Shown one piece after another: positions 52,844-57,619 of a stretch of DNA of 64,000 bases. The position numbers and the translations under genes are program-made. The DNA comes from Selaginella moellendorffii (Eukaryota; Plantae; Lycopodiophyta). Positions within the stretch are counted from its first letter, which is position 1. Each line of letters starts with the position of its first letter. Location of the stretch: positions 3,526,880 through 3,590,879 of the forward strand of contig NW_003314261.1 of assembly GCF_000143415.4 (NCBI RefSeq), given 5' to 3'. Under the pieces are notes generated by a model that saw only the letters and a program-made list of their open reading frames with translations, was not told the origin of the DNA and ran no database searches.

Positions 52844-53779
52844 ATGGCGTCCACGCTTCTCGCAGCACTTGCATTCCTCTCCCTCTTCGCTATGGCCGCT
52901 CAATCCAAGCTCGTCGAGACGCCACCGCTCGTCCTCGACTACCACAACGGCCCCGTTCTCTCCGGCCCGGAGCCGATCAAGATCTACCTCGTCCTCTACG
53001 GCCGCTTCTCCAAGAGCGACAAAGCCACCATCACCGATTTCCTCTCGAGCTTCTCTCCGGCGGCGGCCAAGAGCTCCTCCACCGTCGCCAAATGGTGGTC
53101 GCTCACGCAGAAGTACACCGACTCCAAAGGCCAGGGAGTCGCGCAGAGCCTCGTCCTGGCCAAGCAAGCCACCGATCGCAAGTACTCGCTCGGCAAATCC
53201 CTCAAGAAGTCGGACATCGCCACCCTGGTCGCGAGCTCCATCCGCTCAAAGGCCTTCCCGTCCGACCCCCGCAGCATCTATCTCGTCCTCACCGCCGCCG
53301 ACGTGAGCGTCCAAGGCTTCTGCCAAAACACCTGCGGCGAGCACCTCTACACTTTCCCCGGCTCCTCCACCGGCGGCGCAATGCTTCCATACGCCTGGGT
53401 TGGCAACTCCGAGGCGCAGTGCCCGGGATTCTGCGCCTGGCCATACGCCAAGCCGCAGTTCGGCCCCCAGGAGGTTCTCACCGCTCCAAACGGCGTCGGG
53501 GTGGACGGGATGATCATCACCATCGCCAAAGTTCTCGCTGGAGCCGCCACCAATCCGTTTGGAACCGCGTACTACCAGGGCGAGCAGACGTTTGCGCTCG
53601 AGGCGGCGGGAGCTTGCTCCAGCAGCTATGGGCCGGGGTCGTATCCTGGCTATCCGGGGCAGCTCTCCGTGGATCCCAGCTCCAAGGCGAGCTACAATGT
53701 GGAGGGCGTGAACCAGCGGAAGTTCTTGGTGCCGTGGATATGGAACCCCGCGACTCTCTCTTGCGCTGGACAGCCATGA
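52844..53779 (+). CDS. EXORDIUM/PHI-1 family secreted protein; intronless
   Basis: Signal peptide, YHNGPVLSG, YLVLTAADVSVQGFC, YAWVGNSEAQCPGFCAWPY, PNGVGVDGM, GSYPGYPG, RKFLVPWIWNP. TATAAAA at ~52655. Confidence 0.95.
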   Translation: MASTLLAALAFLSLFAMAAQSKLVETPPLVLDYHNGPVLSGPEPIKIYLVLYGRFSKSDKATITDFLSSFSPAAAKSSSTVAKWWSLTQKYTDSKGQGVAQSLVLAKQATDRKYSLGKSLKKSDIATLVASSIRSKAFPSDPRSIYLVLTAADVSVQGFCQNTCGEHLYTFPGSSTGGAMLPYAWVGNSEAQCPGFCAWPYAKPQFGPQEVLTAPNGVGVDGMIITIAKVLAGAATNPFGTAYYQGEQTFALEAAGACSSSYGPGSYPGYPGQLSVDPSSKASYNVEGVNQRKFLVPWIWNPATLSCAGQP

Positions 53780-54402
53780 GCAAGATCTTCTTCACTGCGA
53801 TCTTCATCGTGTAAGATATTCAAGAGAGTTTAGGGGAAAAAGAAAACAAAAAAAACAGGAGAACTTACGGGAAGTGTTAATCAATCACTGTACATGCCGG
53901 ATGGAACGAACTACTTTTTGGAAATAATGAAGAAAAAGGATGCTTGTCTAACCAGAGCAAGGAGTGTGCTGTCGTCTGGAAGCGTGAGAACTTACAAATT
54001 TCTTACCGGAAATGCCAATTCCAGAGCTCCCAGGATTTTGTTGAAAACGCTAGATAGATCTAGAAATGGAGAGAAATGTTAGAATTCCCTGCCGAAAATC
54101 TACCAGTCACAAGGATTTCGCTAGCTAGAACTAGTAACGGAGAGAAATCTTAGAATGCGGCTGATATCGAGCTGCGCTGATTACAAATCCACCAGTCAGC
54201 CGCGAAGGACATCCAGCGTGAGCGAAGAACCCTAAAAACCCTAACGAACCAGTTTGTGTTCGAATCCCGGGAAGCCAATGGTTTCTTTTAACGGATTTAT
54301 GACGTGCCAGTGTCCGCCCGCGTGACGTGGCGGATCCATGACGCTTGGCTCAGGGTATATGTTTTTTGGCGGGCGGCATTTGAGTTGTGAGAGAGCGAAG
54401 GA

Positions 54403-54608
54403 ATGGCGCCACCGAGACGATCGCCCGCTGCCCCATCGCCCATGCGACGACGACGACGCCGAAGAGGAGTAAGCTCTCCCATCCATCGGATTCTTAGCAC
54501 TTCTAACCTAAGCTCGATCGACTCTTGCCGTGACTTCAGAGACGTAGAAGAAGAAGAGCGAGAAAGAGATCCGCGGCAACAAACTCTGGAATCACCATGG
54601 ACGATTAG
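54403..54608 (+). CDS. Candidate 2-exon Arg-rich micro-gene (protamine-like peptide or uORF), 44 aa
   Basis: Exon 54403-54468, 71-nt intron 54469-54539 (GTAAGC...CTAAC...TTCAG) and exon 54540-54608 give MAPPRRSPAAPSPMRRRRRRRGRRRRRRARKRSAATNSGITMDD*. Confidence 0.5.
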
Positions 54609-54822
54609 AAACCTCTCTCGATCGCCGACATTACCTAGATGAGGAAGAAATCGTCTCCATTTCTCCTCCCATTTGTAAAAACCATGCCCACCGTTCAATT
54701 TGAATCCTATTGTACGATATGGATCTCTCTTAAATCTAGGGTTCTTTTCAAAGTTAGGGTTCTAGCAGCGGCTCGGCTAGGGTGAATTGGCGATCGAATT
54801 GGCGACCGAATTGGCGCTCGGG

Positions 54823-57619
54823 ATGTCGAAATTCTGGGACCAGGTGCGTCGGATTCGTGTTGCTCTTGGTATTGATCTCTTGTTTTCGTGCAGGGAGTTG
54901 ATAGCGACTCGGAGGACGATGTGAAATCGAGCGAGGATGCCGATGACTTCAAGGATATCGTCACGCCCGGTGAGGCGGGGAACAAGTATCTCAACAAAAC
55001 GAGCGATAGCGAGGGGTCGGAGGATGAGAAGCGCGTCGTCCGCTCGGCCAAGGTCAAGAGGTTCGACGAGATGTCGGCAACCATCGACCAGATCCGCAAT
55101 CACATGAAGATCAACGACTGGGTGAGCCTCCAGGAGAGCTTCGACAAGATCAACAAGCAGCTGGAGAAGGTTTTACGCGTCACTGAGACGGCGGCTCCTC
55201 CTCGCATCTACATCAAGGCGCTGGTCATCCTCGAGGATTTCCTGAGCCAGACACTGGGCAACAAGGAGCTGAAGAAGAAGATGAACAGCAGCAACTCCAA
55301 GGCTTTCAACTACATGAAGCAAAAGCTCAAGAAGAACAACAAGATCTACGAGGCCGAGATCGAGCAGTTCCGCAAGAACCCAGAGTCCGAGGCCGAGGAC
55401 GAGGATGACGAGGGCGACATGAGCAGCGAGGAGTCGGAGCCGGACTTTATCGAGGAGGTTCAAGACGTTGCTCCGGTGTCTGAGTCGGATAACGAGGATG
55501 GGTGGCAGAAGTCGGGCAAGGGGCCTAGCTATATCATCAAGAAGGACCCGAGCGAGATAACTTGGGACATGGTGGATAAGAAGCTCAAGGAGGTGATTGC
55601 TGCTCGAGGGAGGAAGGGAACCGATCGAGTGGAACAGGTTGAGCAGCTCACTTATCTCGTTACGATTGCAAAGACCCCGGCGCAGAAGCTCGAGATCCTC
55701 CTCCACGTTGTCTCGGCTCACTTTGACGTGACGACGAGCTTGAACACGCATCTTCCGGTGAACGTGTGGAAGAAGTGTGCGCATAGCATGATGGCCATTC
55801 TGGACATACTAGCGCAGCATCCCAACATTGTCATGAGCGAGAATGCCGAGCCCGAGTCGGAGAACGAGACGCAGAAGGGAGACGACTATCCCGGCCAGAT
55901 TCGCGTCTGGGGGAACATTGTTGGGTTCGTGGAGCGGCTGGACGACGAGCTCTTCAAGAGCTTGCAAGTGATCGATCCGCACACCAAGGACTATGTCGAC
56001 CGCATGAAGGACGAGCCAGCCTTCTTGGTGGTGGCACAGAGTGTTCAGGAGTACGTGGAGCGCATTGGAGATACGAGAGCCGCCGCTCGGGTGGCACTTC
56101 GCAGGCTGGAACACGTCTACTACAAGCCTCAGGAGGTTTACGAGGCCATGAGAAAGCTCGGGGAGAGCCAGAAGACGGCGGAGGCTGGTGCGGAAGACAC
56201 CACGCTGGTTCTGGGAACGCCCGACCTTCCGGAACTCAGTCGGACTATGATGGACGACCTCATAACTCTGATCTACAAGTTTGGAGACGAGCGCACAAAA
56301 GCCAGGGCCATGCTATGCGACATCTATCACTACGCCATCTTCGACGACTTCTACACTGCGAGGGACCTCCTGCTGTCGAGCCGACTGCAAGATGGGATCA
56401 TGAACATGGACATCCTGAGCCAGATCCTGTTCAACAGAGCTATGGCGCAGCTGGGACTGTGTGCCTTCCGGACCGGTCTCATCACTGAAACGCATGCGTG
56501 CCTGTCGGAGTTCTATGCCGGCGGACGGGTGAAAGAGCTCCTTGCACAAGGAGTTCAGCAGAGTCGGTTTTACGACAAGACTCCAGAACAGGTGATTGTT
56601 TTCATAGTTTTGTGTTTCTTCTCAACTTGTGAGGTGGTTTTCTTGTGTAGGAAAAACTCGAACGCCGCCGTCAAATGCCGTTTCACATGCATATCAACCT
56701 GGAGCTACTAGAGGCGGTCCATCTAATCTGTGCAATGCTGCTGGAGGTTCCCAACATGGCCGCCAACGCGCACGACGTGAAGAAGAAAGTTTACAGCAAG
56801 ACGTTCCGCCGTCTCCTGGACATCTACGAGAAGCAGGCCTTCATCGGGCCCCCAGAGAACATCCGTGACAACATCATGGCTGCGAGCCGGGCTCTGATGA
56901 AGGGCGACTGGGAGAAGGCGGTGGCGATCGTCCAGGGCCTGGATATCTGGAAGCTGCTCCGGAAGCGAGAGTTCGCCATGGACATGCTCAAGAGCAAGAT
57001 CCAGGAGGAGGCGCTGCGGACTTATCTCTTCACGTACGCATCGTCCTACGACTCGCTGAGCCTGGACCAGCTCATGGCGATGTTTGATCTCCCGGAGGGG
57101 CTCGTTCACAGCATCGCCAGCCGGCTCATGGCAGCGGAGGAGTTCCACGGCAGCTGGGATCAGCCGACTCGCTGCATCGTCCCACACAACGTGGAGCCGA
57201 CGAGGCTCCAGGCTCTGGCAATCCAGTTCGTGGACAAGCTCTCGACGCTGGTGGAGATGAACGAATTCGCTGACAATGCTCGCACCGGTGGTGGTGGTGG
57301 TGGCACGGACTTCTTCAGCAGGCACAAGGATACGCAGGACTACGTTGGAGCGGTGGCGGGGAAGAGGGAGCGTGGCGGCGAGCGTGGTGGCGGAGGCTAT
57401 GGCAGGGATAAGAACCAGCGCGGCGGCGGCGAGCGTGGTGGCGGTGGCGGTGGTGGAACTGGAGGATCTTACGCCGCTGGCTATCAGAGTACCAGGTACC
57501 AAGATGCTTATAGTAGCGTTGGAAGAACTCCATACCAGAGTGGGCCTAGCGGAAGGGGCGGACAGTCGGATGGTGGTGGTAGAATGGTGAATTTGCTTCG
57601 TGTTGGTGGAAGGTTTTAA
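54823..57619 (+). CDS. eIF3c: Translation initiation factor 3 subunit C, 3 exons
   Basis: [87 protein letters not shown] domain, Gly/Arg tail. Confidence 0.96.

Follow-up and report, generated by a model that had tools for sequence, protein, structure and literature searches.

The region just upstream of the eIF3c gene of Selaginella moellendorffii gives rise to an unannotated, low-abundance spliced transcript, which probably belongs to the lncRNA/sORF class and owes its poly-arginine open reading frame to triplet repeats, with incidental translation at most (we put this reading at about 60%). All coordinates refer to the window, the 64,000-nt stretch of contig NW_003314261.1 that was analysed. 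A compact bidirectional promoter at 54300-54373 would drive a short RNA polymerase II transcript on the plus strand and, in the opposite direction, a more abundant, non-coding-looking RNA, while (CGA)n and (AGA)n microsatellites within the plus-strand unit would yield the poly-Arg frame. With its 3' end some 75 nt short of the eIF3c start, the small RNA would constitute a separate unit within the eIF3c upstream region.

The two neighbouring genes are readily identified. An exact protein look-up identifies the open reading frame at 52844-53779 as EXORDIUM-like 1 of S. moellendorffii, and the frame from 54894 shows 100% identity to the eIF3c of this species in a protein search. Between them, and extending into the first exon of eIF3c, the following features can be distinguished.

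53807..54332, minus strand: divergent spliced transcript, with introns at 53948-54006 and 53802-53868
54300..54373, no strand assigned: candidate compact bidirectional promoter region, situated between the end of the minus-strand contigs (54332) and the plus-strand starts (54374/54377)
54374..54468, plus strand: first exon of the small transcript, its left limit being the 5'-most base in the contigs rather than a mapped transcription start site
54403..54608, plus strand: poly-Arg small ORF (54403-54468 joined to 54540-54608), 44 codons and a stop
54469..54539, plus strand: intron of 71 nt, GT..AG (77 nt in haplotype B)
54540..54689, plus strand: exon 2 and 3' end; the stop codon TAG (54606-54608) is followed by an 81-nt trailer
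54690..54764, plus strand: gap free of RNA contigs, taken as the eIF3c core promoter; depth 0 in X1, X6 and X8
54765..54843, plus strand: eIF3c exon 1, with a 5' UTR of at least 58 nt, then ATG 54823 and 7 codons

The transcript itself was traced in Logan contigs of four sequencing runs (X1, X6, X8 and X15), which were compared with 53500-55700 and whose ends, strand and level are to be read as indicative only. Three of these runs, X1, X6 and X8, behave as RNA, since the eIF3c intron between 54843 and 54894 is gone and a minus-strand transcript shows two CT..AC joints. A first-pass annotation, made from the sequence without database searches, had proposed a small spliced transcription unit at this position, and contigs from these three unrelated studies do cover 54374-54689. 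It had also named reads over 54468/54540 as the check to be made. A 245-nt contig of X8 (record 19) runs from 54374 to 54468 and then from 54540 to 54689, making this joint exactly with a side of 95 nt. In X1, record 4 starts at 54377 and makes the same exact joint on the haplotype B allele, with three additional bases in the (CGA/GAC) repeat; the contigs of this run indicate that both alleles of the small transcript are expressed and spliced. X6 contributes a contig over 54540-54689. No RNA-like contig of X1, X6 or X8 retains 54469-54539, a segment present in the DNA-like X15 contig and in both assembled haplotypes (haplotype B being contig L001). The 71-nt intron is real and efficiently removed, and the GTAAGC donor, the CTAAC sequence 33 nt before the acceptor and the TTCAG acceptor from which it had been predicted are all found within 54469-54539. 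In haplotype B, a 6-nt insertion lies inside this intron.

The 3' end is equally consistent between runs. Both X6 and X8 have contigs that stop at 54689, and the allelic contigs of X1 stop at 54683, where an allele bubble closes. It is likely that polyadenylation takes place at C54689/A54690, with UGUAAAAA 14 nt upstream in a plant-like arrangement, the contigs themselves carrying no tail. The mature RNA thus defined measures at least 245 nt (54374-54689 minus the 71-nt intron), and it is scarce, with a word depth of 3-11 compared to 500-650 for eIF3c in X6 and X8. Rfam (E<=1) gives no family anywhere between 52500 and 57000 and a tRNA scan yielded no tRNA at the locus, while the fold of the small RNA is not unusual (z=+0.74 against shuffles). 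Lacking both an Rfam family and an unusual fold, it does not appear to be a structured RNA. A start site near 54374 and a non-coding status would both fit these contigs.

The ORF within this RNA has several of the attributes of a coding sequence. As had been predicted, ATG 54403 lies in a good context (GGAATGGCG) and is preceded by an in-frame stop (TGA 54388-54390). No AUG precedes it in the observed RNA, and with G at -3 and G at +4 its context is a strong one for plants. Splicing gives, again as predicted, a 44-aa peptide that contains 17 Arg residues out of 44 and two SP sites and ends at TAG 54606-54608. The two Arg runs remain in phase across the splice, a 1-in-3 coincidence, and the frame stays open in each of the three alleles seen, those of haplotype A, haplotype B and X8. 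The favoured reading of the ORF as a repeat by-product has to accommodate these observations. Given the good context of its first AUG, the RNA could plausibly undergo some incidental translation.

Other properties of the ORF point to the repeats. When the mature RNA is shuffled by dinucleotides, 17% of the shuffles contain a first-ATG ORF of 44 codons or more (P=0.17) and 31% contain any ORF of this size (P=0.31), and the length of the poly-Arg ORF is within chance. The two Arg runs consist of (CGA)n and (AGA)n, purine-rich triplet microsatellites that encode Arg in one frame and Asp/Glu in the following one, and the Arg clusters of the peptide are explained by these repeats. Such clusters are not confined to this place, as the six-frame translation of the 64-kb window contains 16 Arg-rich 8-mers (>=6 R), one of them on the minus strand opposite the (CGA/GAC)n repeat of the ORF itself. 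Moreover, the codons are atypical: AGA and CGA account for 15/17 of the Arg codons in the poly-Arg ORF, compared to 6/32 (19%) in eIF3c and EXORDIUM-like, and GC3 is 0.44 compared to 0.79 in these two neighbouring genes.

The peptide has no visible relatives. At E<=10, Pfam contains no match for the spliced Arg ORF, the acidic ORF or the unspliced ORF. A word search with the 44-aa peptide among predicted proteins of 24-77 aa returned three candidates, none of which scored. When nine ORF variants were looked up exactly in a collection of 15 billion proteins, the EXORDIUM-like neighbour alone was on record, and none of the frames of the poly-Arg ORF carries an annotation. In a synteny approach through eIF3c, no other Selaginella is among the hits of the protein search, the next-best matches after S. 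moellendorffii being at 62-64% identity (ferns, bryophytes and Diphasiastrum), and the transcript contig of an eIF3c relative (L002) is 5'-truncated and without its 5' UTR.

Comparison of the two haplotypes gives a limited view of selection on the ORF. In haplotype B it is intact and codes for 45 aa, with one additional Arg codon from repeat slippage. Both substitutions between the haplotypes are non-synonymous (R>S and A>V), although with n=2 this comparison has almost no power. Divergence over the ORF (2/135) is no lower than over the whole aligned stretch (13/650), again with very low power. Nothing indicates that the peptide is under selection.

These data bear directly on whether the locus is a genuine, lineage-specific micro-protein gene, coding for a nucleic-acid-binding peptide of 44-45 aa destined for the nucleus or nucleolus. 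A capped-type, spliced, short RNA in which the first AUG opens the ORF is what such a gene would produce. The peptide is 39% Arg and has two SP sites, neither haplotype nor the X8 allele breaks the frame, and the repeat indel that separates the haplotypes is in frame. However, an in-frame indel is to be expected from a triplet repeat anyway, the length of the ORF requires no selection, its Arg codons are precisely those which the neighbouring genes avoid, with a GC3 far below theirs, and one of the two haplotype substitutions actually removes an Arg. Neither Pfam, nor the proteins of 24-77 aa, nor the exact look-up provides a family, a relative or an annotation, and the RNA is found at low level in the runs of all three studies. 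On balance we consider such a gene unlikely. Its more specific version, in which a young, Selaginella-specific gene was born from triplet microsatellites upstream of eIF3c and its poly-Arg peptide is indeed made, for example as a nucleolar, chromatin-binding or male-germline basic protein, is in our estimation quite unlikely.

A protamine would account for only a small part of the probability given to a micro-protein. The resemblance to protamines and other sperm nuclear basic proteins lies in the small size, the Arg clusters and the SP sites near the N-terminus, and it had led the first-pass annotation to propose a sperm nuclear basic protein. This proposal has not fared well, given that the peptide is without a Pfam match and without a related protein of 24-77 aa, that its codons are atypical and that both substitutions change a residue. 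The Arg content of true protamines is typically more than half, well above that of this peptide, where the Arg residues fall into two runs written in rare Arg codons and are followed by a neutral to acidic C-terminal tail (…NSGITMDD). In Marchantia, to our knowledge the one plant in which a protamine set has been worked out, the protamines derive from histone H1 and not from a micro-gene, so that the plant precedent also argues against this identity. Protamine-like proteins have been described in Marchantia sperm (PMC12851517), and in the literature we found nothing on protamines of Selaginella or on a poly-Arg locus upstream of eIF3c.

A second family of tiny basic proteins comes to mind. The ribosomal protein eL41, of 25 aa, is highly basic, often missed by annotation and nearly invariant across eukaryotes. 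The present ORF is likewise tiny and extremely basic, and it lies close to a gene of the translation machinery that has telo-box motifs in its promoter. However, its peptide shows no ordered similarity to eL41, and the Pfam result, which includes Ribosomal_L41, argues against this assignment as well.

The position of the ORF raises the alternative that it acts as a stalling uORF, the second function that had been suggested for it. In that case, a minor long-leader isoform of the eIF3c mRNA would start around 54374, and the poly-Arg/CGA run would tune eIF3c synthesis. CGA and poly-basic runs are able to slow ribosomes in yeast and mammals, and the ATG of eIF3c (54823) is on the same strand, 214 nt downstream of the poly-Arg stop. 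As in the plant uORFs that act through stalling or a conserved peptide, a short ORF with a poly-basic CGA run thus precedes the main ORF. However, unlike in those systems, the poly-Arg ORF has not been seen on the main-ORF RNA, and its transcript apparently ends 75 nt before eIF3c begins. In X6, the small RNA is represented by a contig of depth 3.2 that stops at 54689 and eIF3c by one of depth 650 that sets in at 54765, and no contig of X1, X6 or X8 covers 54690-54764 or links the small RNA to the eIF3c mRNA. These are contigs and not raw reads, and X1 and X8 lack coverage even of eIF3c exon 1, so that the holes would be compatible with rare read-through. Still, the break is not due to an allele bubble, since both haplotypes are identical between 54690 and 54764, and the 3' ends of the small RNA agree between X6 and X8 and lie within 6 nt of them in X1. 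Any read-through would make up far less than 1% of eIF3c mRNA, not enough to govern its output, and the peptide gives no sign of conservation. Control of eIF3c by this ORF is therefore very unlikely.

On the eIF3c side of the gap, record 13 of X6 starts at 54765 and makes the joint 54843/54894 across a 50-nt GT..AG intron. This first intron of eIF3c (54844-54893) is inserted after only 7 codons, its junction being confirmed by the RNA contig. A 12-nt unit, GAATTGGCGATC, is repeated three times in tandem at 54784-54820 in the eIF3c 5' UTR, immediately 5' of the start codon, and the tandem copies are kept in both haplotypes. The 128 nt from 54655 to 54782, which span the eIF3c core promoter, show zero haplotype differences, unlike the poly-Arg ORF. 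Reverse telo-boxes (TAGGGTT) occur at 54737 and 54755, within 54690-54764 and immediately ahead of the eIF3c contig. Telo-boxes are established plant promoter elements of the 5' regions of genes for the translation apparatus (PMC3022908, PMC3212954).

The repeats of the small RNA are also open in the +1 frame, where after splicing they would encode an Asp/Glu-rich protein of 70-77 aa starting from ATG 54338 or ATG 54359. The first-pass annotation had raised this frame as a caveat. It does remain open over the splice in haplotype A, where it forms the longer ORF; otherwise the evidence largely disfavours it. Both ATGs are in a weak context and lie upstream of the furthest 5' RNA bases (54374/54377). 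In haplotype B, ATG 54338 is lost through a 10-nt insertion and a TGA appears in frame after the E-run. There is no Pfam match for the acidic product, and its sequence is absent from the protein collection. Of all the candidates, coding in the acidic frame is the least likely, and we regard it as extremely improbable.

The small RNA is accompanied by a divergent transcript on the minus strand. CT..AC joints at 53947/54007 and 53801/53869 define a spliced RNA whose contigs reach from 54332 to at least 53807 in X1 and X8. Its depth exceeds that of the small RNA in both runs, and no contigs of it occur in X6. It is directed antisense towards the 3' end of EXORDIUM-like. This transcript contains no ORF of more than 42 aa, and its fold is no better than that of shuffles (z 0.31). 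Its sequence includes two direct repeats of 38 nt, separated by 71 nt, as well as a double telo-box (54228-54244). Two classes of small RNA were considered for it and rejected. A C/D snoRNA made from the repeated units would require a C box, of which there is none on either strand between 53780 and 54720, and ARAGORN finds no tRNA to go with the T-arm-like sequence GTTCGAATCC at ~54258 (GTTCGAATCCCGG, 54258-54270).

Because the 5' ends of the two RNAs are only about 40 nt apart and flank TGACG/ACGT and E2F-like motifs, a compact bidirectional promoter offers a straightforward explanation for both. The three TGACG motifs (54300, 54323 and 54339), the GTATAT (54355) and the TTTTGGCGGG (54364-54373) reported by the first-pass annotation are all located where the promoter would be. 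At 54300 and 54323 the motif reads TGACGTG and thus has an ACGT core, the GTATAT at 54355 is TATA-like, and an E2F-like TTTGGCGG lies at 54365. By their resemblance to known elements, the TGACG/ACGT, TATA-like and E2F-like motifs may well contribute to transcription in the two directions. The 10-nt insertion of haplotype B (AGGGTCACGG, at 54338; L001 ~7520) falls within this region, between the second and the third TGACG. X15 and its sister runs, which stem from one sample and have 3-4 million contig letters each, cover only 54169-55055, unspliced. Rather than RNA, they seem to represent a DNA assay of chromatin or open promoters, in which case 54169-55055 would be marked as active promoter.

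Taken as an lncRNA/sORF-class transcript, the small RNA resembles many others. It is transcribed and spliced, and the contig ends suggest a promoter and a 3' end of its own. Its ORF combines atypical codons and GC3 with a length expected by chance, is without relatives and shows no signs of selection, the haplotype test being of low power. Like the sORF-bearing lncRNAs of plants, the RNA is short, spliced, low in abundance and unannotated, with an ORF below 100 codons and neither relatives nor an RNA family. It differs from them in its tandem position just 5' of the core promoter of a housekeeping gene, in the bidirectional promoter of about 40 nt that it would share with its divergent partner, and in the extreme poly-Arg tract. 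Such lncRNAs with sORFs and short, spliced intergenic transcripts have been surveyed in moss (Fesenko et al. 2019, PMC6724668) and in 26 plants including S. moellendorffii (PMC9673970).

For S. moellendorffii, a spliced transcription unit and its divergent partner are thus new to the annotation, and the intron of the former could be called correctly from the sequence alone. This is ordinary biology: plants commonly produce short, weakly expressed RNAs with sORFs, and a genome as GC-rich as this one readily gives rise to Arg runs. Nevertheless, if the peptide were made and active, the locus would represent either the de novo birth of a gene from microsatellites or the first sperm basic protein of a lycophyte.
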